From positions 186,001-250,000 of the IMG/VR virus record IMGVR_UViG_3300046787_000200: a stretch of 64,000 nt of DNA; one strand, given 5' to 3'. The first letter of the stretch is position 1. Every line of letters begins with the position of its first letter. This document shows positions 22,547-35,466 of the stretch, in pieces. The position numbers and the translations under genes were made by a program. The notes under the pieces were generated by a model, which ran no database searches, was not told the DNA's origin, and was given only the letters and a program-made list of their open reading frames with translations.

Positions 22547-22759
22547 ATGCCATATAAAAATCGTATTAAGACATTAGAAGAATCAGTTAGATTACTAGAT
22601 AATCAAATCTTTCAATTAGAGAAAGCCGGTAATAGTGATCCTGAGAAAATTAAAAAGTTGAGAGAGACTAAAGATAAGTATTTTACCGAATTGCGATTAA
22701 TGAATAGAGCGCAATGGGACAATGACCATAACACAGTAGATTTCGGAGATGACCGATGA
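22547..22759 (+). CDS. Hypothetical coiled-coil protein
   Basis: AGGAG RBS; 70 aa. Confidence 0.7.
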   Translation: MPYKNRIKTLEESVRLLDNQIFQLEKAGNSDPEKIKKLRETKDKYFTELRLMNRAQWDNDHNTVDFGDDR

Positions 22760-23211
22760 ACGAACAAGTATCACAAGCATTAGCTGAAAAACGTCAGCGT
22801 ATTAAAGATAAAGCAATTCGTACAATTTTTGTACGTTTTCAAAAAGAAGGTATTCATAAGTACCCAGCGGCTGCAACAGACCCTAACTTGGCAACAGGTG
22901 ATGAGTATGATGTTAGCTTTCTAGCAACTCCACATCGACACATCTTTCACTTTGAGGTGTCGATTGAAGTGTTTCACAACGACCGTGATATCGAGTTTAT
23001 TCAATTCAAGCGATGGTTAGAGAATCAATATTCTCAAGGCATTCTTGCATTGGATTACAAAAGTTGTGAAATGATTAGTGATGACCTCTATGAAGTTATT
23101 GCAACTCGATATCCAGATCGTAATATCGTTATTCAAGTATCAGAAGATAATGAAAACGGTGCTACGATTGTTTATAACACAACACAACCTTATCAACATC
23201 TAGCTATTTAA
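22756..23211 (+). CDS. dpdL: QueD paralogue, DpdL-like putative CDG decarboxylase
   Basis: LATPHRHIF (LxxxHRHxF instead of CxxxHGH), DRDIEF, SCEM, VSEDNENGA T-fold tail. Confidence 0.7.
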   Translation: MNEQVSQALAEKRQRIKDKAIRTIFVRFQKEGIHKYPAAATDPNLATGDEYDVSFLATPHRHIFHFEVSIEVFHNDRDIEFIQFKRWLENQYSQGILALDYKSCEMISDDLYEVIATRYPDRNIVIQVSEDNENGATIVYNTTQPYQHLAI

Positions 23212-23224
23212 AGGAATTAATAAA

Positions 23225-23431
23225 ATGGCAAAACAACAATATCAATCTAACCCTCGTGTTAATCAAATTTTCGAGGACCTTGAGAACTACTTGGCATTCT
23301 GCCAAGACTTTGGTTACAAGTTTGACGAATCAACCTTGTACGATATGCGTAGTTTCGCATATCGCCAGTTCACTAAAGCAGTGGTAGGCAAGTGGGCTAA
23401 AGATCAATGGGCTGAGGATACTCGTCCATGA
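23225..23431 (+). CDS. Hypothetical protein
   Basis: AAGGA RBS; 68 aa. Confidence 0.7.
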   Translation: MAKQQYQSNPRVNQIFEDLENYLAFCQDFGYKFDESTLYDMRSFAYRQFTKAVVGKWAKDQWAEDTRP

Positions 23432-24195
23432 ACATTGTCTTAGTCACAGGCGGCTTTGACCCACTACATACAGGTCATATCGCTTATTTTAATGCCGCAA
23501 GACAACTAGGCGACAAGCTTATCGTTGGCATCAATAGTGACGAATGGTTGGCTCGCAAGAAGGGTCAACCTTTTATGCCTTATGATGAACGTGCAGGAAT
23601 CATTTGGGCGTTACAAGATGTAGACGGTATCATTAAGTTTGATGATAGTGATAACAGTAGCCGTGATGCTATTGTTAAATTACGTGAACAATGTCCCGAT
23701 GATACTATTATCTTTGCTAATGGTGGCGATAGAAATCAAACAAATATCCCTGAAATGCAAGGATTTGAAGAAGATGCAAACATTCTATTCGCTTTCAATG
23801 TAGGCGGTGATGACAAAAAGAACAGTAGTTCTTGGATTCTACAAGAATGGAAAGCACCCAAAACAGAACGAGATTGGGGATACTATCGTGTTCTACACGA
23901 AGTAGATGGTACTAAAGTAAAAGAACTTACAGTAGAACCAAAACAATCTCTTAGTATGCAGAAACATTCAAAGCGTAGTGAACATTGGATCGTTACTGAA
24001 GGCAAATGCAAGATACGCCGTTATGCTGAAACGGGTGAATTGACTGAGACAGTTCTAAGCAAACATGATACAATCACTATTCAACCTGATGAATGGCATC
24101 AGCTAGTTAACACGTTTAGCAAACCATGTAAAATCGTAGAGATTCAATATGGTAAGAAATGTGTAGAAGAAGATATTAAGAGACAAAATGCGTAA
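23428..24195 (+). CDS. Cytidylyltransferase fused to a mannose-6-phosphate-isomerase-like cupin
   Basis: TGGFDPLHTGH, ANGGDR, NSSS; WGYY, LSMQKH..RSEHW, IVEIQYG. Confidence 0.85.
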   Translation: MNIVLVTGGFDPLHTGHIAYFNAARQLGDKLIVGINSDEWLARKKGQPFMPYDERAGIIWALQDVDGIIKFDDSDNSSRDAIVKLREQCPDDTIIFANGGDRNQTNIPEMQGFEEDANILFAFNVGGDDKKNSSSWILQEWKAPKTERDWGYYRVLHEVDGTKVKELTVEPKQSLSMQKHSKRSEHWIVTEGKCKIRRYAETGELTETVLSKHDTITIQPDEWHQLVNTFSKPCKIVEIQYGKKCVEEDIKRQNA

Positions 24196-25387
24196 ACTAT
24201 TTTACATGGGCCTTGAGCCTTACAAAGCACGATATACATTGCAGTTACAAGACTGGAATGAAGCTGTATTCAAACGCAGGGGCATTGACTATGTTATTGT
24301 TCCGGGCGAAACATTATCTAATGACCAAGCTATTGTTACAGGTCAAGTACTAGACGCACATGGTCGCACATACTTTGGTATGAGTCAACTTATGAATCTA
24401 GTTAAGATGATGAAGCAAGGTGATGTAGGCGCAGGTGATATAGTTTATTTTGAAGATATGTTTCAGCCGGGCATTGAATCATTGCCCTACATTATGAAAC
24501 AGATTCCGATCACAAGTCGTCCTAAGATTTTTGTTCGATGTCTAGCACAATCTATTGACCCTGATGATTTCGTACACGTATGGGGTATGAGTGAGTTCAT
24601 GGGTCACTATGAGAAGATGGTTGATAGTTTTGCTGATGGTGTGCTTGCTAGTAACGAAGAAATGGTCATGCATATGAAGATTGCGGGTTGGAAGGCACCG
24701 ATCTACAATATCTCAGGCTTAGCGTTTGGTAAGAGTGAAGTACGAGGACGTGTCGGTAATGCTATCAAACCATTCAATGAGCGTAAGATGCGTATTGCAT
24801 TCAGTGCTCGTTGGGATCAGGAAAAGCAACCAGACTTCTACATGGATGTGATTGAAGAATTCTTTGACCGTTATGGTTATAAGGATCGTTATGGTGTACC
24901 TCGCAATGTAGAATTCTGTGTATTCAGTGGCAGTGCTTTAAAAAGCAACAATGATAGTTACATGAAGCGCACCAAAGAAATGCAAAGTCGTGGTATGTTA
25001 CGTATATACGAAGACCTAGATAAGAATGCATATTATGGGTTGTTGAATGATACTAGAATATTGTTTAACTGTGCTTTGCAAGATTGGGTAAGTAACACAG
25101 TAAGTGAAGCAGATGCATTGGGTTGTAATGTATTGTATCCCGCATATCGTAGTTTCCCTGAAACATTTGCGAATGACTATACAAGACTTTATACGCCCTG
25201 GAGTGTTGAAGATGCGGCAATTAAGTTGTATAATATGTTACATCAGCCGCATATGAATCAAGGAAAGATTAGTGATTGGACTGATGGTACAATCGATAGA
25301 ATTTGCGATATCCTAGAAGGTAACGGACAACAATGGTTGCGTATGGATAGTGATTATCGTAAACACACCCGTGAAGCAAAATATTAA
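24188..25387 (+). CDS. GT-B fold glycosyltransferase
   Basis: ARWDQEKQP; QDWVSNTVSEADALGC; YRSFPE. Confidence 0.75.
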   Translation: MRKLFYMGLEPYKARYTLQLQDWNEAVFKRRGIDYVIVPGETLSNDQAIVTGQVLDAHGRTYFGMSQLMNLVKMMKQGDVGAGDIVYFEDMFQPGIESLPYIMKQIPITSRPKIFVRCLAQSIDPDDFVHVWGMSEFMGHYEKMVDSFADGVLASNEEMVMHMKIAGWKAPIYNISGLAFGKSEVRGRVGNAIKPFNERKMRIAFSARWDQEKQPDFYMDVIEEFFDRYGYKDRYGVPRNVEFCVFSGSALKSNNDSYMKRTKEMQSRGMLRIYEDLDKNAYYGLLNDTRILFNCALQDWVSNTVSEADALGCNVLYPAYRSFPETFANDYTRLYTPWSVEDAAIKLYNMLHQPHMNQGKISDWTDGTIDRICDILEGNGQQWLRMDSDYRKHTREAKY

Positions 25388-25825: not shown

Positions 25826-25857
25826 TAAATAATTGTGCTACACAACGGTAGCACAAT
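25826..25857 (+). promoter_or_regulatory. Late promoter core plus perfect 10-bp leader hairpin before folE
   Basis: TAAATA then ATTGTGCTAC-ACAACG-GTAGCACAAT. Confidence 0.55.
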
Positions 25858-25891
25858 GTCAAAACAAAACCATCACAAAGGAAGGTTATCT

Positions 25892-26572
25892 ATGAGTTAT
25901 AATAAAACAAAAACAGATCCAGAGTTGGGTCAACAAGTGCATGAGCACTTAGTAAAAATGGGTGTTGAGACACCCACAAAACCAAACAAACTTATTCGCA
26001 CAGATAAGATTCATATCATTGAAGGTCATTTCAAATCTATCATGGAAACTCTAGGGTTAGACTTAGAAGATGATAGTCTTATGGATACACCTAAGCGTGT
26101 TGCTAAGATGTATGTAAATGAAATCTTTTGGGGACTTGATTACGAAGCATTCCCTAAATGTACAACAGTTGACAACAAGATGCAATACAACGAAATGGTT
26201 GTAGAGCGTAATGTTAATGTTCAATCTAACTGTGAACATCATTTTGTAGTAATCGATGGATTGGCTACTGTAGCTTATGTCCCTAAGCAAAAAGTTTTAG
26301 GGCTTAGTAAGATTAACCGTATCGTAGAATATTTCAGTAAACGTCCTCAAATTCAGGAACGCTTAACAGAGCAGATATTTCACACCTTACAGTTCATCCT
26401 TGATACAGAAGATGTTGCAGTTATGATTGATGCACAACACTATTGCGTGAAATCACGTGGTGTAGAAGATACAGGTAGCTCTACTGTTACATGTCGTTTA
26501 GGTGGTGGATTCAAAACTGACCCAGCCGCAAGACAAGAATTCTTGCAAATTGCTAATAAAGGTTGCAAATGA
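25892..26572 (+). CDS. folE: GTP cyclohydrolase I
   Basis: TPKRVAKM, SNCEHHF, GLSKINR, RPQIQERLT, HYCVKSRGV. Confidence 0.97.
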   Translation: MSYNKTKTDPELGQQVHEHLVKMGVETPTKPNKLIRTDKIHIIEGHFKSIMETLGLDLEDDSLMDTPKRVAKMYVNEIFWGLDYEAFPKCTTVDNKMQYNEMVVERNVNVQSNCEHHFVVIDGLATVAYVPKQKVLGLSKINRIVEYFSKRPQIQERLTEQIFHTLQFILDTEDVAVMIDAQHYCVKSRGVEDTGSSTVTCRLGGGFKTDPAARQEFLQIANKGCK

Positions 26573-26918: not shown

Positions 26919-27154
26919 TGGGGTATCGTAAACAAATGGATTATAACGCAGTACATCATCAAATCTATATGAGTGGTGTAGAATTGCATAGCAACTACAA
27001 TGATGGTTTCAATCAATTTGAAATCAAAAAAGACCTACATCGCATCAAGTGGTTGTTAGATGAGATTCTAGTAGACAGTCCTACATTCGTTGGTGAAGAA
27101 GAATTCTTAAAAGAACACGAACAAACTAAAATGTGGAGGACTCTTTCAAAATGA
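26918..27154 (+). CDS. Hypothetical protein
   Basis: TAATG coupling; GGAG RBS. Confidence 0.7.
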   Translation: MGYRKQMDYNAVHHQIYMSGVELHSNYNDGFNQFEIKKDLHRIKWLLDEILVDSPTFVGEEEFLKEHEQTKMWRTLSK

Positions 27155-27624
27155 TTTTCAATCACATTAAAGAATTAAAAGCACAAGGAAAGAAGATCGG
27201 TATTACTTTTAGTACATTTGATCTTTTACATGCCGGTCATGTAGCTATGTTGAGTGAAGCAAAGAATCATTGTGATTACTTAATTTGTGGACTGCAAACT
27301 GACCCTACAATTGATCGACCTGATACTAAGAACAAACCAATTCAAAGTATTGTAGAACGACAGATTCAATTAGCGGCTTGTCGCTATGTTGATGAAGTAG
27401 TTGTATATCAAACTGAACAGGACCTCATTGACCTACTGCTTATTCTACCATTAGATGTTCGCATTTTGGGCGTAGAGTATGCAGATAAAGAGTTTACCGG
27501 AAGATGGGAAGGTAGTGAGCGCGGCATTGAACTTGTGTTCAATGGTCGTGACCATAGTTTCAGTAGTAGTAGTTTAAGAAAACGAGTAGCAGATGCTCAA
27601 ATTATAAATACACTTAATAAATAA
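27151..27624 (+). CDS. Glycerol-3-phosphate cytidylyltransferase-like (TagD family)
   Basis: TFDLLHAGH, CRYVDEV, RDHSFSSSSLR. Confidence 0.85.
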   Translation: MIFNHIKELKAQGKKIGITFSTFDLLHAGHVAMLSEAKNHCDYLICGLQTDPTIDRPDTKNKPIQSIVERQIQLAACRYVDEVVVYQTEQDLIDLLLILPLDVRILGVEYADKEFTGRWEGSERGIELVFNGRDHSFSSSSLRKRVADAQIINTLNK

Positions 27625-27625
27625 T

Positions 27626-28420
27626 ATGCCAAAAAGAATACTAATAATGGGTCTTCCAGGATCCGGAAAAACATACCTAGCACAGCACATTGTAGACCAT
27701 CTACAAGCTGAAAAGAAAAAAGTTGGTTGGTTAAATGCCGATGACGTTCGTAAAAAGTACAACGATTGGGACTTTAGTACTGAAGGTCGTATTCGTCAAA
27801 GCCATCGTATGCGTGAATTAGCAGATGCAATGACTAATGTTGATTATGTGATATGTGACTTTGTTGCACCACTTGTTGAAATGCGTAACAACTTCAAAGC
27901 AGACTGGACTATTTGGGTTGATACCATTGACAAAGGTCGTTTTGAAGATACTAATAAAGCCTTTATTCCACCTGATGTATATGACTTTAGAATCACAGAA
28001 CAACATGGTGAAAAGTGGGGTGAGTTCATTGCCGCACATATCTTAGATAATAGACGCAGACCGATATTTGATTGGCAAAAAGAAACAGTACAGATGTTAG
28101 GCCGCTGGCAACCATGGCATGAAGGACATCGTAAATTATTTGAACGATCTATTGCCAAGACAGGACAGGTTGTAATACAGATACGTGATTGTCAAGGATG
28201 GAATGGTTCTAATCCATTTGCCATCGAACAAGTAAAGAACTTTATTAAACGTGATTTAGATATGTTATATCAAGGTCAATATGAAATTCAAATTGTTCCA
28301 AATATTGTTAATATTACATATGGTCGTGATGTTGGATATAAGATTGAACAAGAAACTTTTGATGATGCTACACATTCTATTAGTGCCACAAAGATTCGCA
28401 AGGAGATGGGCCTTAAGTAA
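27626..28420 (+). CDS. Adenylylsulfate-kinase-like P-loop domain fused to an HxGH nucleotidyltransferase
   Basis: GLPGSGKT, LNADDVRK, DFSTEGR; GRWQPWHEGH, ISATKIR. Confidence 0.8.
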   Translation: MPKRILIMGLPGSGKTYLAQHIVDHLQAEKKKVGWLNADDVRKKYNDWDFSTEGRIRQSHRMRELADAMTNVDYVICDFVAPLVEMRNNFKADWTIWVDTIDKGRFEDTNKAFIPPDVYDFRITEQHGEKWGEFIAAHILDNRRRPIFDWQKETVQMLGRWQPWHEGHRKLFERSIAKTGQVVIQIRDCQGWNGSNPFAIEQVKNFIKRDLDMLYQGQYEIQIVPNIVNITYGRDVGYKIEQETFDDATHSISATKIRKEMGLK

Positions 28421-29010
28421 TGTTTTCTGATTTGAAGTTACCTATAGTAATTATTTCATCAATACGTACAGGATCTACCGGCCTTCTTTTTGAATTAGAA
28501 AAGATATTTTTAGAAAAGGGTATCAGTCCTGTAGTATTAAATGAACCTATAGTATATAACAACAAATCAGATTCAGTTATACCATTTTTAAAATCTATCA
28601 ATACTAATCAATTTATTCTTAAAGTACATGCATATGATTTACAATATTACCCAAAATATTTTATTAAAAAACTAGAAAATAATTCATATAATATTATAAG
28701 ATTGCGTAGAAAATCAATAATTGATCAATGCTTAAGTTTATATATTAGTCTATATACAAAAATTTGGATTAATACTACTGAAACAAATAAACAGTTAGAA
28801 AATACTACTATTGAAATATCTGAACAATTATTACATAAAACAATTGAGGATGTTAAAAAATTTAATAAAGCTATTGATAATTGTGCATATAAATTTTCAT
28901 TAGATTTAATCTATGAGGATTTGGAATTAACAAAAACGTTTACGGTAAAAAGAAAAACGTCAATAACATACGAAGAACTAAGAAGTCGTATTTCCAAAAT
29001 GATTACATGA
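28420..29010 (+). CDS. Sulfotransferase-like protein (AT-rich)
   Basis: SSIRTGSTGL 5'-PSB-like loop; LRRKSIIDQCLS 3'-PB-like; YEDL. Confidence 0.6.
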   Translation: MFSDLKLPIVIISSIRTGSTGLLFELEKIFLEKGISPVVLNEPIVYNNKSDSVIPFLKSINTNQFILKVHAYDLQYYPKYFIKKLENNSYNIIRLRRKSIIDQCLSLYISLYTKIWINTTETNKQLENTTIEISEQLLHKTIEDVKKFNKAIDNCAYKFSLDLIYEDLELTKTFTVKRKTSITYEELRSRISKMIT

Positions 29011-29023
29011 GTTAAATATCACA

Positions 29024-29089
29024 ACCGGTCTCTTTGGGCTCACCCCGGTATACAAATTCTGCGTCCTATGCTATAATCTAACATAGGAG
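29024..29089 (+). ncRNA. Candidate preQ1-I-like riboswitch variant with anti-SD hairpin
   Basis: ACCGG/CCGGT stem, loop U...CACC, A-rich tail; TCCTATG/CATAGGA stem covers the SD; TAAATA at 29013. Confidence 0.5.
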
Positions 29090-29095
29090 AAATCA

Positions 29096-29578
29096 ATGGC
29101 AAATAAAAAATTCTTTTCAACAAAAACATACAGACAAATAGGTCCTGTCGCATACCGTCAATGGCGTGCTGATAGTCATTGTAATTTGATTCATGGCTAT
29201 GCTATGAGTTTTCACTTTGAGTTTGAAGCCGACACACTAGATGCTCGTAATTGGGTAACTGACTTCGGTGGACTACGCCCACTTAAAGATAAACTAGAAG
29301 AATGGTTTGACCATACTCTATTAGTCGCACAAGATGATCCTATGCGTGATGAACTATTGCGTTTAGGTGAATTGAAACTAGCAAAGATTACAGAAGTAGA
29401 ACGCACTGGCTGTGAAGGTATTGCTGACTTCTTGTATGAATACATTAACACAATCTTCTTGCCCAATTGCGGTAGTGAAGAAGCTAAACGTGTATGGTGC
29501 TGTAGAGTAGAGGTCCGTGAGACTGATAGTAATATGGCAGGGCGTGGTGGTCACCGAGAAGATAGAGAGTTTGAATGA
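29096..29578 (+). CDS. queD: 6-carboxy-5,6,7,8-tetrahydropterin synthase
   Basis: SHCNLIHGY (CxxxHG), WVTDFGGL, FDHT, VEVRET. Confidence 0.9.
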   Translation: MANKKFFSTKTYRQIGPVAYRQWRADSHCNLIHGYAMSFHFEFEADTLDARNWVTDFGGLRPLKDKLEEWFDHTLLVAQDDPMRDELLRLGELKLAKITEVERTGCEGIADFLYEYINTIFLPNCGSEEAKRVWCCRVEVRETDSNMAGRGGHREDREFE

Positions 29579-30750
29579 GCAAAAGAGTAGCAGTAATCGG
29601 TGCAGGCATTACCGGCATCACAACAGCATATTACCTTGCTAAACAAGGTTATCAAGTACACGTGTACGAACAAGAGCCTTACCCCGCAATGCGTACTAGC
29701 TTTGCTAACGGGGGTCAGGTCTCTGTAAGTAACAGCGAAGTATGGACTACATGGAGTAACGTCAAGAAGGGCATCAAGTGGCTCTTTAAGAAAGATGCTC
29801 CACTACTCATTCGCCCTCGTTTAGATTTCAAACAATGGAAGTGGATCGCAAAGTTCTTATACAATACTGCCACCAATCAGTATGAAAAGAACACTAGCGA
29901 AACAATTAAAATGGGCCTAGAATCTAGTAAGTTGTACAAAGAGATTATTTACACAGAGAAACTATCGTTCGACCAATCACCTAGTGGCATCTTGCACTTC
30001 TACAAAGACGACCAATACTTTGAAGCCGCTAAACAAGCACAAACTATCTATCGTAGTAATGGTTGCGAGTGGGATATTGTTAGTACACAAAAAGTTAAAG
30101 AACTAGAAAGTAAACTAGAATCTGTTAAAGGTATTGTAGGTGGTGCTTGGACATTAAGTGATTGGACCGGAGACATTCACAAGTTTTGTATTGAACTAGA
30201 GAAAGTATTAAAGAAGAAATACGGTGTAGCCTTCATTTACAATACAACAGTTACCAAAGAGTATATGCAACAGCTAGTTAATTTGTATGATAGTGTTGTT
30301 GTGTCAGCGGGTGTAGGTAGCGTTGAAATTGCTAAGTATGTCGGTGATAACCTTGATATATATCCAGTCAAGGGTTATAGTATCACTATTAACAACGTAG
30401 ATAAGAAACACTTACCTATCGTTAGTCTATTAGATGACCAGGCAAAGATTGTTACATCAACATTGGGCAACAAGTTCCGTGTTGCAGGTACTGCTGAACT
30501 TGCAGGTGAGAACTACGATATCAGACACGATAGAGTTAAACCACTATTAGATTGGGTAAGAACTAACTTCCCGAATATCAATACGCATGATTACAGTAGT
30601 TGGGCTTGCTTGCGACCAATGACTCCTAATATGATGCCTATTACCAAATGTAGTGACAAGAATAGTAAAGTGTACTATAATACAGGACACGGTCACTTAG
30701 GCTGGACATTAGCACCATACACAGCAAAACTTATTTCGGAACAAATATGA
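29575..30750 (+). CDS. dadA: D-amino acid dehydrogenase (FAD-dependent)
   Basis: GAGITG, TSFANGGQ, YPVKGYS, RVAGTAE, LRPMTP, NTGHGHLGWT. Confidence 0.88.
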   Translation: MSKRVAVIGAGITGITTAYYLAKQGYQVHVYEQEPYPAMRTSFANGGQVSVSNSEVWTTWSNVKKGIKWLFKKDAPLLIRPRLDFKQWKWIAKFLYNTATNQYEKNTSETIKMGLESSKLYKEIIYTEKLSFDQSPSGILHFYKDDQYFEAAKQAQTIYRSNGCEWDIVSTQKVKELESKLESVKGIVGGAWTLSDWTGDIHKFCIELEKVLKKKYGVAFIYNTTVTKEYMQQLVNLYDSVVVSAGVGSVEIAKYVGDNLDIYPVKGYSITINNVDKKHLPIVSLLDDQAKIVTSTLGNKFRVAGTAELAGENYDIRHDRVKPLLDWVRTNFPNINTHDYSSWACLRPMTPNMMPITKCSDKNSKVYYNTGHGHLGWTLAPYTAKLISEQI

Positions 30751-31595
30751 GTCATTTAAAAGTATCAGAGTTATTTTACAGCATTCAAGGTGAGGGTAGA
30801 TACATGGGTGTTCCCTCCGTGTTCTTACGAACATATGGATGTAATTTTACATGCGGTGGATTCGGCATGTCTAAGGGAGAAGTTAGTAGTGAGAGAGATG
30901 TTATTGCGATTAAAGCAGAAGATTATACAGATTATAAATCCCTACCGCTTGTCAGTACGGGATGTGATAGTTACGCAAGTTGGGACCCTAGGTTTAAACA
31001 TCTTAGTCCTGTGCTCACTACCGATGCTATTGCTAGTAGCATTATGGATATACTTCCTCATGGGCGTTGGATGGATGAGCATCTTGTTATTACAGGTGGT
31101 GAACCTCTTCTCGGTTGGCAAAGAGCGTATCCAGAATTACTTTCGCATGAAAAAATGAAGGCATTGAAAGAGATTACATTTGAAACTAACGGCACACAAG
31201 AACTGAGTCAAGACCTTAAAGTATATCTACAACAATGGAAGATCAACAGAGAAAAGAATGCATTAACATTTAGTGTAAGCCCTAAATTAAGCATTAGCGG
31301 TGAGAAGTGGGAAGAAGCAATTCGTCCTGAGATTATTCATCAATATGAAAGTATAGGCTTTGTATATTTGAAGTTTGTTATTGCTACGAGTGAGGATGCA
31401 CTTGAAGCAGATAAGGCAGTTAAAGAATATCGTCACAGAGGATTTAGAGGGCCAGTATACTTTATGCCATGCGGTGGTGTAGAATCACTTTACAATCTAA
31501 ATGCTAAGAATGTAGCTATTGAAGCAATGAATCGAGGATATAGATACAGTGATAGATTGCAAGTGCCGTTGTTTAAAAATGAATGGGGAACATAA
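30747..31595 (+). CDS. queE: 7-carboxy-7-deazaguanine synthase (radical SAM)
   Basis: ELFYSIQGEG, FLRTYGCNFTC...CDS (insert in the Cys motif), TGGEP, ETNGT, SPKL. Confidence 0.92.
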   Translation: MSHLKVSELFYSIQGEGRYMGVPSVFLRTYGCNFTCGGFGMSKGEVSSERDVIAIKAEDYTDYKSLPLVSTGCDSYASWDPRFKHLSPVLTTDAIASSIMDILPHGRWMDEHLVITGGEPLLGWQRAYPELLSHEKMKALKEITFETNGTQELSQDLKVYLQQWKINREKNALTFSVSPKLSISGEKWEEAIRPEIIHQYESIGFVYLKFVIATSEDALEADKAVKEYRHRGFRGPVYFMPCGGVESLYNLNAKNVAIEAMNRGYRYSDRLQVPLFKNEWGT

Positions 31596-31794: not shown

Positions 31795-32895
31795 ATGAGT
31801 TATTTATTTACAAGTGAGAGCGTATCGGAGGGACACCCTGATAAAATTGCAGATGCAATTAGTGATAAAGTATTAGATTTAGTAATGACACATGAGGATC
31901 GAGCATTACGTTGTGCATGTGAAACATTGGTTACTACTAATCGTGTTATTGTTGCAGGTGAGTATAAAGGAGTATTGCACAACGAAGCCGTAGAAAATGC
32001 TGTACGTGATGTTATTAAAGATGTAGGTTATGAACAATTAGGTTTTGATTGGCGTACAGTAGAGATTACTAATCTATTGCACGGACAAAGTGCTGATATT
32101 GCGTTAGGTACAGATACGTTTGGTGCAGGTGATCAAGGATTAATGTTTGGCTATGCATGCAATGAAACAGATGTACATATGCCCTCAGCTATCTATTGGG
32201 CGCATCGTATTGTAGAAGAACTAACACAGATTCGTAAGTCAGGGTCAGTTGAATGGTTAGGTCCAGATGCTAAAAGTCAAGTAACATTTGAATATAACGA
32301 TGACAATACACCTAAGCGTATTAGTAAAGTAGTGTGTTCAACGCAACACAGTGAAGGTATTGATATCAATTCAGTTAGAATGGGTGTTGAGAATATCATT
32401 CGAGGAATACTACCGGAACAATATTTAGACAATGAAACTGAATTCTTTATTAACCCAACTGGTCGATTTGTTATCGGTGGTCCTGATGGTGACACTGGGC
32501 TTACTGGCCGTAAGATTATCGTTGATACTTATGGTGGGTATAGCCCTCATGGTGGCGGAGCCTTCAGTGGCAAAGATCCTACTAAAGTGGATAGGTCTGC
32601 TGCCTACATGATGCGATATATTGCTAAAAATATTGTAGCAAGCGGACAAGCAAACTGGGCTACTTGTCAGATTAGTTATGCTATTGGTATGGCACAACCT
32701 ATGAGTTTCTACATTGAAACTGCACATACTGAACAAAGTCGCACACTAACAAAATGGGTACAAGACAATGTTGATTTGACACCTAACGGTATCATTGATC
32801 GTTTTGATTTGTTTAGACCGATCTATAGTAGCACAACTAACTATGGTCACTTTGGTAAGCCAGACTTGCCTTGGGAAAAAGTAGATTTGTTCTAA
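31795..32895 (+). CDS. metK: S-adenosylmethionine synthetase
   Basis: FTSESVSEGHPDK, GAGDQG, GGGAFSGKDPTKVDRS. Confidence 0.98.
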   Translation: MSYLFTSESVSEGHPDKIADAISDKVLDLVMTHEDRALRCACETLVTTNRVIVAGEYKGVLHNEAVENAVRDVIKDVGYEQLGFDWRTVEITNLLHGQSADIALGTDTFGAGDQGLMFGYACNETDVHMPSAIYWAHRIVEELTQIRKSGSVEWLGPDAKSQVTFEYNDDNTPKRISKVVCSTQHSEGIDINSVRMGVENIIRGILPEQYLDNETEFFINPTGRFVIGGPDGDTGLTGRKIIVDTYGGYSPHGGGAFSGKDPTKVDRSAAYMMRYIAKNIVASGQANWATCQISYAIGMAQPMSFYIETAHTEQSRTLTKWVQDNVDLTPNGIIDRFDLFRPIYSSTTNYGHFGKPDLPWEKVDLF

Positions 32896-33311: not shown

Positions 33312-34639
33312 GAACATACGATAAACGCATTGGATTTTTAGTAAGCTATCAAACACTAATACCGCATGGTGGTATTGGACAATTTACAAAAAGTTTTTGT
33401 GAGTTGATGGATAGTCATAACATTAAAGTAGATATCATTACTGATAAGTTACCCCAAGACAATGAGTTTATTAAATCTATTCCGACTAATATTATAGCAC
33501 CAGCAGAATCATTACGATATACTGAGCATAGTAATATTTTTATGTATGGTGATACTTTCTGTTATGAACGTATGGCTAACTTCCGTAATAGTATTATTAA
33601 AGCATTGAGTAGTAATTTATATGATGCATTAGTTTGCAATACATACGAGACTGTTCAAGTGGCTAGCACTATGGGTCTTGATGATTGCATTCAAATCATC
33701 GCATATACTCATTTAGAAAGTCAAATCTTTAAAGATACAAAGAACCCTTTCTTATACAATACAAATGCAATGATGCGACAGCAATTAGATACACCGGGAG
33801 TATATGTAGGGACTCAAAGTAAATTTAATCAATTGAATATCAGTGATACTGCGTATCATCTTCCTATCCCTATTACAGAGAAATCATTATTAGAAGAATA
33901 TCACGGACCACGTGAAGGTGTATTATTCGTTGGTCGTTGGGAAGAAGGCAAGAACCCTGAATTGTTTATTGACTTAATTGAACAGACTGGGTTGCCTGCT
34001 AAGGTTATGACTAGTCCTAATGGTGTAAAGAAGTTTGAAGATAGACTAGCAAAAATTGGTGCTGTGTTTGATGTTCGTTCTAGTATCATTGGTCAAGAGA
34101 AAGTTGATTTCATCAAGTCAAGTCGTATTGCATTTAATCCTAGTGTAGTCGAAAGTTATGGCATGGCATTCTATGAACAACACATTCAATTGCCTACGTT
34201 AGTATTAGAGAGCCAACGATGGACTAAAAACTTCAATGAAGATTTCTTTTACAAATGCACAAAGAAAGACATGGCTAAGAGTGCACAAGAGTTATATGAT
34301 AGTTTTGAGAAACCAGAAACTTGGTATAACTTAGGATCATTGGATCATGCTAAACAGCAAGAAGATAGTGTATTTCACAAGTGGAATAGTTGCTTCCGTG
34401 AATTTCAGCCTAAGTTATCTAACAGTAATACAGCTAAAATTTGTAATGAAACAACTATTACACATTCTGACTTCATTGAAAATCTAGGTCGTAGTGTAAT
34501 TTGTATTGATGATGTTCGTAGCGTGTTGACCAACAAACATAAGTTTAGAGTTATCTATACAGACAATGACACTTATTTAACTAAAGATCCAGTCTTTGAA
34601 CCAGCAGAAGAAACTAGTGAGGAATTATTTCAGTGGTAA
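33308..34639 (+). CDS. GT4-like glycosyltransferase
   Basis: HGGIGQF, LFVGRWEEGKNP, PSVVESYGMAFYE. Confidence 0.8.
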   Translation: MRTYDKRIGFLVSYQTLIPHGGIGQFTKSFCELMDSHNIKVDIITDKLPQDNEFIKSIPTNIIAPAESLRYTEHSNIFMYGDTFCYERMANFRNSIIKALSSNLYDALVCNTYETVQVASTMGLDDCIQIIAYTHLESQIFKDTKNPFLYNTNAMMRQQLDTPGVYVGTQSKFNQLNISDTAYHLPIPITEKSLLEEYHGPREGVLFVGRWEEGKNPELFIDLIEQTGLPAKVMTSPNGVKKFEDRLAKIGAVFDVRSSIIGQEKVDFIKSSRIAFNPSVVESYGMAFYEQHIQLPTLVLESQRWTKNFNEDFFYKCTKKDMAKSAQELYDSFEKPETWYNLGSLDHAKQQEDSVFHKWNSCFREFQPKLSNSNTAKICNETTITHSDFIENLGRSVICIDDVRSVLTNKHKFRVIYTDNDTYLTKDPVFEPAEETSEELFQW

Positions 34640-35466
34640 AAAAAGTTTTAATTACAGGTAACAGTGGTTACATAGGTTCACATCTTACTAAGATGTTAAA
34701 GAATGATTATGAAGTTTATGGATTAGATAAAGTAGAGCCACAAGAGTCACCTCATACATTCTATCATTGTGATATCAATCGTCAGTTTAGTTTAGAAGAT
34801 GAGTTTGATTGTGTGATTCATTTAGCCGCATTGGTTAATGTAGGTGAAAGCGAAATCAAACCTATTCCATATTACATTACTAATTTGAATGGCACAATGA
34901 ATGTGTTGAATAAAATTAAAACAAAGAACTTTATCTTTGCAAGCACAGGAGCCGCACAAGATTGTTGTAGTGCATACGGAATTAGTAAACGTGCGGCAGA
35001 AGATGTAGTTAGAGAATATTGTATCACCCATCGTCCAACACCATATACAATCTTTAGATTTTATAATGTTATTGGAAGCGAAGGCTTTGCTCCCACTAAC
35101 CCCGATGGATTGATGTATAATCTAATTATGGCTATGCAATCAAAACAGTTTACTATATTCGGTAATGATTATGATGTATCACCTGATGGCACTTGTATTA
35201 GAGATTATGTTCATGTAAATGAAATATGTGATGCATTAAAACAAGCTATTGAGAAACCTAGTAATAGTGTAGAATGTTTGGGTCACGGAGTAGGATATAC
35301 TGTAAAAGAGATTGTTGATGAGTTTCAAAAAGTCAATAATATCAACTTCAACGTGAAATACGGTTCAAGAAGAAAGGGTGATGTGGCCAGTAGTGTATTA
35401 GAAGATGTATCTCCTTATATGCGTAATTTGTATACAATAGACGAGTTGCTAAAGGTTGACAAATAA
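34633..35466 (+). CDS. NAD-dependent epimerase/dehydratase (GalE-like)
   Basis: TGNSGYIG, HLAA, YGISK, RFYNV, DGTCIRDYVHV. Confidence 0.9.
   Translation: MVKKVLITGNSGYIGSHLTKMLKNDYEVYGLDKVEPQESPHTFYHCDINRQFSLEDEFDCVIHLAALVNVGESEIKPIPYYITNLNGTMNVLNKIKTKNFIFASTGAAQDCCSAYGISKRAAEDVVREYCITHRPTPYTIFRFYNVIGSEGFAPTNPDGLMYNLIMAMQSKQFTIFGNDYDVSPDGTCIRDYVHVNEICDALKQAIEKPSNSVECLGHGVGYTVKEIVDEFQKVNNINFNVKYGSRRKGDVASSVLEDVSPYMRNLYTIDELLKVDK

Follow-up and report, generated by a model that had tools for sequence, protein, structure and literature searches.

The region examined lies within a 64,000-nt window (bases 186001 to 250000) of a 352,012-bp IMG/VR virus record rated complete (IMGVR_UViG_3300046787_000200). 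An 85-nt gap separates a 196-aa ORF of unknown function from a 160-aa ORF that matches Pfam PTPS (6.9e-16), is 70% identical to QueD of Acidovorax phage ACP17, and falls below the NCBIfam QueD cutoff; we refer to it as queD-like. [quoted passage not shown] The original prediction, which read these elements from the sequence alone as a preQ1-I-like switch with mutually exclusive pairings, is confirmed with respect to every element and its position. A single-sequence fold yields P1 plus the SD hairpin at -14.5 kcal/mol, which is no more stable than shuffled sequence (z = -0.24); thus, the single sequence proves nothing by itself, and the case rests on comparison with relatives.

Table 1. Features of the queD-like leader and of neighboring ORFs, in coordinates of the window
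Position	Strand	Feature	Sequence or remarks
22756-23211		DpdL-like ORF	LATPHRHIF (signature LxxxHRHxF); 53% identical to ACP17 gp125
24188-25387		Predicted GT-B/GT4-fold glycosyltransferase	399 aa; model pLDDT 81.7; best matches MshA, BshA, PimA
25835-26572		FolE
27133-28420		Cytidylyltransferase and kinase ORFs
28420-29010		196-aa ORF	Unknown function
29012-29019	+	Late-promoter-like box	TTAAATAT; core TAAATA 29013-18; ends 5 nt before P1
29024-29028	+	P1 5' strand	ACCGG; pairs with 29045-49
29029-29035	+	L1	UCU (consensus NCU) plus variable linker CUUU
29036-29039	+	P2 5' strand	GGGC; pairs with 29063-66
29040-29044	+	L2	UCACC (consensus UCAYC); C29044 immediately 5' of the P1 3' strand
29045-29049	+	P1 3' strand	CCGGU; the 16-nt P1 loop starts with U and ends CACC
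29049-29054	+	Putative -35 element (DNA)	TATACA
29050-29062	+	L3	AUACAAAUUCUGC; 13-nt A-rich tail, UCUGC invariant
29063-29066	+	P2 3' strand	GUCC; its CC is shared with the anti-SD arm
29065-29087	+	SD-sequestering hairpin	CCUAUG (29065-70)/CAUAGG (29082-87); 11-nt loop
29069-29077	+	Putative extended -10 element (DNA)	TGcTATAAT; TG 29069-70, TATAAT 29072-77
29085-29089	+	Shine-Dalgarno sequence	AGGAG
29096-29098	+	Start codon of the queD-like gene	ATG
29096-29578	+	PTPS/QueD-like gene	160 aa; stop overlaps the start of the next ORF (ATGA)
29575-30750		D-amino-acid-dehydrogenase-like gene
30747-31595		QueE-like radical SAM gene	phrog_2076, 1.5e-53
31795-32895		MetK

Conservation and covariation of the leader RNA

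A protein search with the QueD-like ORF recovered 310 relatives in IMG/VR, of which 80 loci were retained. DNA similarity to the window begins exactly at 29013, upstream of which the neighboring genes differ, so the leader travels together with queD. The 38 distinct leaders from these loci share an invariant skeleton in which P1 changes by compensation (ACCGG/CCGGU, AGCGG/CCGCU, AGAGG/CCUCU) and a loop segment changes together with the four to seven bases that follow the invariant UCUGC (GGGC/GUCC, GGCA/UGCC, GGCG/CGCC, GAAC/GUUC, GGAA/UUCC; GGUG/CACC also occurs in relatives). The element is intergenic in most loci, and conservation of a coding sequence was rejected on these grounds. A degenerate pattern built from the invariant positions, leaving the inner P1 pairs and all of P2 free, matches the window once (0.00 expected in shuffles) and the whole genome once. 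In 596 Gb of cellular genomes, the pattern matches only 46 places; in 44 of these, the outer P1 bases are not complementary or there is no queD, so they look like chance, whereas the remaining two are MAG contigs with the complete motif and gene.

Both helices covary across more than 200 distinct relatives from three collections. Among 143 unique viral instances, 141 have all five P1 pairs, in five complementary versions. In an alignment of 57 sequences, 91% of cells are paired and the covariation score is 0.312, against 0.095 +/- 0.013 in shuffles (0 of 500 as high) and 0.045 to 0.126 when the partners are slid; here, P1 is 99.6% paired with two covarying pairs, and P2 is 80.7% paired with double changes in all four pairs. 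A set of 36 sequences with a longer (5-bp) P2 is 93% paired and the score is 0.326, against 0.162 in shuffles (0 of 500). A register-free test agrees: cognate loop-tail duplexes are stronger than permuted ones (-5.19 against -3.53 +/- 0.16 kcal/mol; 0 of 2,000 permutations reached the observed value).

As a check independent of the pattern, a covariance model built from 98 instances was run on 100 loci that were fetched only by protein similarity to two other QueD-like subfamilies. It found the motif in 84 loci, lying directly upstream of the gene in 83 and separated from it by an inserted ORF in one. In this set, P1 is 98.5% paired and three of its five pairs covary, and the duplex test repeats (-5.48 against -3.94 +/- 0.23 kcal/mol; 0 of 2,000). 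P1 is 98.5 to 100% paired, with covariation at positions 1 to 3 (AU/UA; GC/CG/UA; CG/UA/AU). G-U pairs in P2 show that the + strand is the one that folds.

The resulting consensus comprises a 5-bp P1; an L1 of NCU, with C and U invariant, plus 0 to 8 variable nucleotides; a P2 of 4 to 7 bp, sometimes with a bulged A; L2, UCAYC; and a 13-nt L3 of the form NUAYAAAYUCUGC, which the P2 3' strand follows immediately. Natural exceptions include UCG in L2, UCCGC in L3, and a shortened L3. We are highly confident that this is a real, conserved, queD-specific structured RNA, present in hundreds of uncultured aquatic phages. Megablast and blastn searches of the region and of the leader gave no homologue among cultured phages, and the covariance model found nothing upstream of queD in ACP17, Xanthomonas X1 and BUDD, Dinoroseobacter R26L, or Sinorhizobium Phosso.

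Association with a QueD-like gene and its pathway

Of 119 ORFs downstream of the motif in viral contigs, 113 fall in one PTPS/QueD-like cluster, and a 114th hits Pfam PTPS on its own; representatives of all four subfamilies, as well as a 306-aa outlier, pass the Pfam PTPS cutoff. In the metagenome set, 99 of the 101 motifs with a fully paired P1 and enough downstream sequence are followed by such a gene within 130 nt. The usual gene order in relatives is DpdL, GT4, FolE, (kinase), motif-QueD, QueE.

The window matches the DpdL-type 7-deazaguanine clusters of phages (PMC10516641) in that FolE, QueD, and QueE are present, QueC is absent, and there is a QueD paralogue with the DpdL signature; the closest cultured QueD and DpdL are those of ACP17, which that paper names. 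DpdL is present in 22 of 25 large motif-bearing records, and neither these records nor this genome has QueC, the QueF route, or a Pfam TGT. As such, the observation in the original prediction that no preQ1-forming genes are visible holds. This is the QueC-less branch that was proposed to lead to 7-deazaguanine (PMC10516641). However, we could identify no DpdA transglycosylase with Pfam TGT (which DpdA3 is known to escape; PMC10516641) or by homology to ACP17 gp123, which has no homologue here, and the conserved neighboring ORF has a predicted GT-B glycosyltransferase fold, not a TGT fold. The conserved glycosyltransferase suggests that the pathway product may be modified further.

Expression platforms and putative promoters

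The leaders carry at least three types of expression platform. In class A (99 of 143 leaders, including that of the window), the hairpin CCUAUG/CAUAGG hides the SD. In a second group, GUCRUC or GCCAUC, lying directly after or overlapping the P2 3' strand, pairs with GAUGGC or GAUGAC, which is the start codon (e.g., UGCCAUC/GAUGGCA and GUCAUCU/AGAUGAC). In a third group, the pairing is GUCUUC/GGAGAC. When the platform is folded alone, at least three of the first seven nucleotides after UCUGC pair with the SD-to-AUG window in 135 of 143 leaders (mean MFE of -7.0 kcal/mol, against -3.2 kcal/mol for shuffles). The P2 3' strand therefore overlaps the anti-RBS strand in all types, which is the hallmark of a switch and predicts that expression is ON when P2 forms, as the original prediction had proposed. 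Energies in the window agree: the SD hairpin scores -5.9 to -7.1 kcal/mol, the P2 duplex scores -5.8 kcal/mol, and the remnant of four weak A-U/G-C pairs that is left once P2 takes the CC scores +0.5 kcal/mol, although note that the switch differs by only two G-C pairs in class A.

A feature not recognized in the original prediction is that, on the DNA, L3 and the hairpin also read as a near-consensus sigma70-type promoter with a 17-bp spacer (TATACA-17-TGcTATAAT). Of 99 class A leaders, 94 keep TGnTAnnnT, with TATACA or TTTACA 17 bp upstream. The words most enriched upstream of 445 crude gene calls in this genome fall into two families: ATAAATA and TAAATA-type words (5 to 9.7 times expectation, similar to T4 late promoters) and TTGACAA, GTTGACA, CTATAAT, and TGCTATA (4 to 5 times); both boxes in the leader therefore belong to the phage's own promoter types. 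TAAATA peaks 11 nt before P1 across 195 upstream contexts, such that a late transcript would begin at about P1 and carry the aptamer. In contrast, an early transcript from the inner promoter would begin in the 3' arm of the hairpin, lack both the aptamer and the anti-SD strand, and probably escape control, in which case a large share of queD mRNA may never carry the aptamer. Contigs from four metatranscriptome runs of relatives cover the aptamer continuously with queD, some extending further upstream, although these are assemblies and DNA carry-over cannot be excluded.

The overlap with a promoter raises the question of whether conservation acts on the DNA alone, as two promoters and a spacer. 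We consider this very unlikely: compensatory changes occur in two helices, one of which spans the -35 to -10 spacer, the G-U pairs are strand specific, and the aptamer is retained in leaders that have no -10 box. A less easily dismissed, though still doubtful, alternative is that the pseudoknot forms without a ligand, protecting the 5' end of the late mRNA or constitutively keeping the RBS hairpin open, with regulation deriving from promoter choice. Such an arrangement would resemble T4 genes e and soc, in which a promoter within an RBS-sequestering hairpin appears to give a shorter, freely translated transcript; here, however, the inner promoter is of the early type and the outer one of the late type, and the long transcript also carries a pseudoknot that can pull the 5' arm away. 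The conservation of the hairpin with its inner promoter, the enrichment of both promoter types in this genome, and the position of the aptamer near the expected late start all speak for this view. It does not explain the invariant loop nucleotides, nor why platforms without the embedded promoter (the GUCRUC/GAUGGC types) keep the same aptamer and the same overlap between P2 and the anti-RBS strand, and a 4-bp P2 is unlikely to be stable unaided.

Comparison with preQ1-I and possible ligands

The element shares with preQ1-I riboswitches (RF00522; features summarized in PMC11625349) a minimal H-type pseudoknot of about 35 to 45 nt, a 5-bp P1 with G-C pairs at the top, a short P2 between the hairpin loop and the 3' tail, an A-rich L3, a position in front of a queuosine/7-deazaguanine pathway gene, and a cytosine immediately 5' of the P1 3' strand. 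This cytosine, which occupies the position of the preQ1-I specificity cytosine, is invariant in 38 protein-selected leaders, and the base before it is U (as in type I) in about 81%, C in 15%, and A in 3% of 143 leaders. However, no Rfam family matches at gathering (39 bits for RF00522), and RF00522 gives no hit at the element even at E <= 10, either on 351 nt or in the whole genome; none of the weak RF00522 hits in five other motif-bearing records was traced to the motif, although only one was checked by position. (A search of 121 Bacteroidota genomes for RF00522 found none, as did a search for published preQ1-I sequences in PMC3905878.) Furthermore, the first L1 nucleotide, which contacts preQ1 in known structures, is not conserved (U 39, A 38, and C 34 in the metagenome set), L1 is NCU rather than UU or UUC, L3 is six nucleotides longer and ends in the invariant UCUGC, and the P2 3' strand is the anti-SD or anti-AUG strand rather than the SD, so the predicted logic is ON instead of OFF. 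Apart from the two MAG contigs, the element has been found only in phage DNA. Thus, "preQ1-I-like," as originally predicted, is right, and "preQ1-I" would be wrong. Given these differences and the lack of QueC, without which the phages make no preQ0 or preQ1 themselves, a divergent but genuine preQ1-I riboswitch sensing host-made preQ1 or preQ0 is improbable, notwithstanding the shared fold class, the UC or CC dinucleotide before the P1 3' strand, and the adjacent que gene.

We favor, with a probability of roughly 0.6, a roughly 45-nt H-type pseudoknot aptamer fused to an expression platform, together acting in cis as a translational ON switch for the PTPS/QueD-like gene and, through overlapping stop and start codons, probably for the genes behind it. 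A conserved aptamer joined to variable platforms in cis to one functional gene class is consistent with a riboswitch. Ligand binding, the ON direction in vivo, and the use of both promoters are inferred; the conserved unpaired nucleotides and the preQ1-I-like fold make a small ligand with a guanine-like face the most likely stabilizer of P2, with 7-deazaguanine, CDG, guanine, or a pterin intermediate such as H2NTP or CPH4 as candidates. An ON switch on a biosynthetic gene would be unusual if the ligand is the product of the pathway. Phage 7-deazaguanine pathways are known as anti-restriction DNA modification systems, but we found nothing published on their regulation, the phage 7-deazaguanine papers surveyed do not contain the word "riboswitch," and our literature searches found no description of the motif; a metabolite-sensing RNA in front of their first committed gene would be, as far as we could find, the first riboswitch tied to them. 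More tentatively, the element could represent a new riboswitch class, structurally derived from or convergent with preQ1-I, that is dedicated to a phage 7-deazaguanine pathway and responds to a base other than preQ1 (such as 7-deazaguanine or CDG, or guanine released when a transglycosylase swaps bases in DNA) or to the pterin substrate, with a built-in early promoter restricting the switch to late or read-through transcripts. The preQ1-I fold is among the smallest natural aptamers known, and such a relative would show how far that scaffold can be retuned; we know of no described riboswitch with a promoter embedded in its expression platform.

Conserved single-stranded nucleotides fit protein recognition as well as a ligand pocket, and it is possible, though unlikely, that the pseudoknot is instead an operator for a phage translational repressor or activator or for a self-regulating pathway enzyme. 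The phage is T4-like in that its family-B DNA polymerase hits phrog_262 and its closest cultured QueD is that of the T4-like phage ACP17, which encodes regA; T4-like phages probably use RNA operators of this kind, as in the gene 32 leader, where an H-type pseudoknot at the 5' end of the mRNA appears to nucleate gp32 binding. That pseudoknot appears to show no sequence or loop similarity to the element and is associated with a different gene. Against a protein operator, the motif is tied to a single gene family across very different phage backbones and upstream genes, no single protein partner other than the pathway enzymes co-occurs in the data, and the size and fold match the smallest metabolite aptamers. 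Either a protein operator or a ligand-free element would still be a new phage regulatory RNA. Of note is that one lineage (L364-366) carries U in place of the cytosine before the P1 3' strand.

Genes surrounding queD in the window

One ORF in the window encodes a 151-aa protein carrying LATPHRHIF, the LxxxHRHxF signature of DpdL (a proposed CDG decarboxylase; Cui et al. 2023). This protein is 53% identical to gp125 of Acidovorax phage ACP17, and its homologues occur in PA5oct-like Pseudomonas jumbo phages and in Sinorhizobium phage Phosso. A 399-aa ORF, which is conserved between DpdL and FolE in relatives, is homologous to ACP17 gp124. Its AlphaFold model has a GT-B/GT4 glycosyltransferase fold, with MshA, BshA, and PimA among the hits along with a pterin glucosyltransferase, and sugar-nucleotide genes surround it, which hints at a glycosylated deazaguanine or pterin product.

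In the QueD-like protein, the canonical QueD motif CxxxHGH is replaced by CNLIHGY, a change that is also displayed by the other motif-linked subfamilies, and the protein scores below the NCBIfam QueD cut-off. Of note is that Pseudomonas phage Iggy, whose DNA carries dPreQ0, encodes a 49%-identical homologue annotated as QueD. Between queD and the QueE-like gene, with overlapping stop and start codons, is inserted a D-amino-acid-dehydrogenase-like FAD enzyme (NF009074, 453 bits, just under the cut-off), which is present in only 5 of 200 related loci. Downstream of the radical-SAM QueE-like gene lies a full-length SAM synthetase (MetK), which may supply its cofactor.

Coordinates of genes in the window and of motif copies in related loci
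Feature	Source	Position	Strand
ORF with the DpdL signature	window	22756-23211	+
Sugar-nucleotide gene(s)	window	23428-24195
ORF with predicted GT-B/GT4 fold	window	24188-25387	+
Sugar-nucleotide gene(s)	window	27133-28420
QueD-like gene	window	29096-29578	+
D-amino-acid-dehydrogenase-like gene	window	29575-30750	+
SAM synthetase (MetK) gene	window	31795-32895	+
Sugar-nucleotide gene(s)	window	34633-35466
Motif with U in place of C before the P1 3′ strand	loci L364, L365, and L366	about 1430-1481
TAAATA box plus aptamer, two copies	locus L436	1384 and 2547	reverse

Promoter-like words and variant leaders

Across the whole genome from which the window derives, two families of promoter-like words are strongly enriched upstream of genes: (G)ATAAATA/TAAATAC, which are T4-late-like, and TTGACA plus TGCTATAAT, which are early sigma70-like with an extended −10.

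In two groups of relatives (the L024/L035/L065-type and L073/L074-type loci), a short conserved ORF about 140 nt upstream of queD reads through the aptamer and stops at a UAA inside L3. The sequence of its product is roughly ...WYNSxTYEALTxQRSYPNIHPAL or ...DWYFPEASGAHPS, in each case followed by the stop, and its translation would unfold the pseudoknot. A further lineage, represented by loci L364, L365, and L366, is exceptional in having U instead of the conserved C before the P1 3′ strand. Here, the first L1 base (A) could pair with that U. The lineage may have altered specificity or may fold without ligand.

Unusual genomic contexts of the motif

Among cellular genomes, the only hits with the full motif and queD are a 183-kb contig of a Haliscomenobacter MAG (L100) and a contig of a Chitinophagales MAG (L135). 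These are either phage contigs binned into MAGs or a hint at Bacteroidota hosts, although the strong AGGAG SD argues against Bacteroidota hosts. In another instance, a single record of 524,565 bp (IMGVR_UViG_3300027749_002876) holds two queD loci, whose proteins are 98% and 96% identical to that of the window, as well as two DpdL copies; it is probably a concatenated or chimeric assembly of two related phages.

The two copies of the TAAATA box plus aptamer in locus L436 are 1.16 kb apart. The second precedes queD, whereas the first precedes two signal-peptide ORFs and has lost P2 complementarity, an arrangement that looks like a cassette inserted by recombination at the motif.
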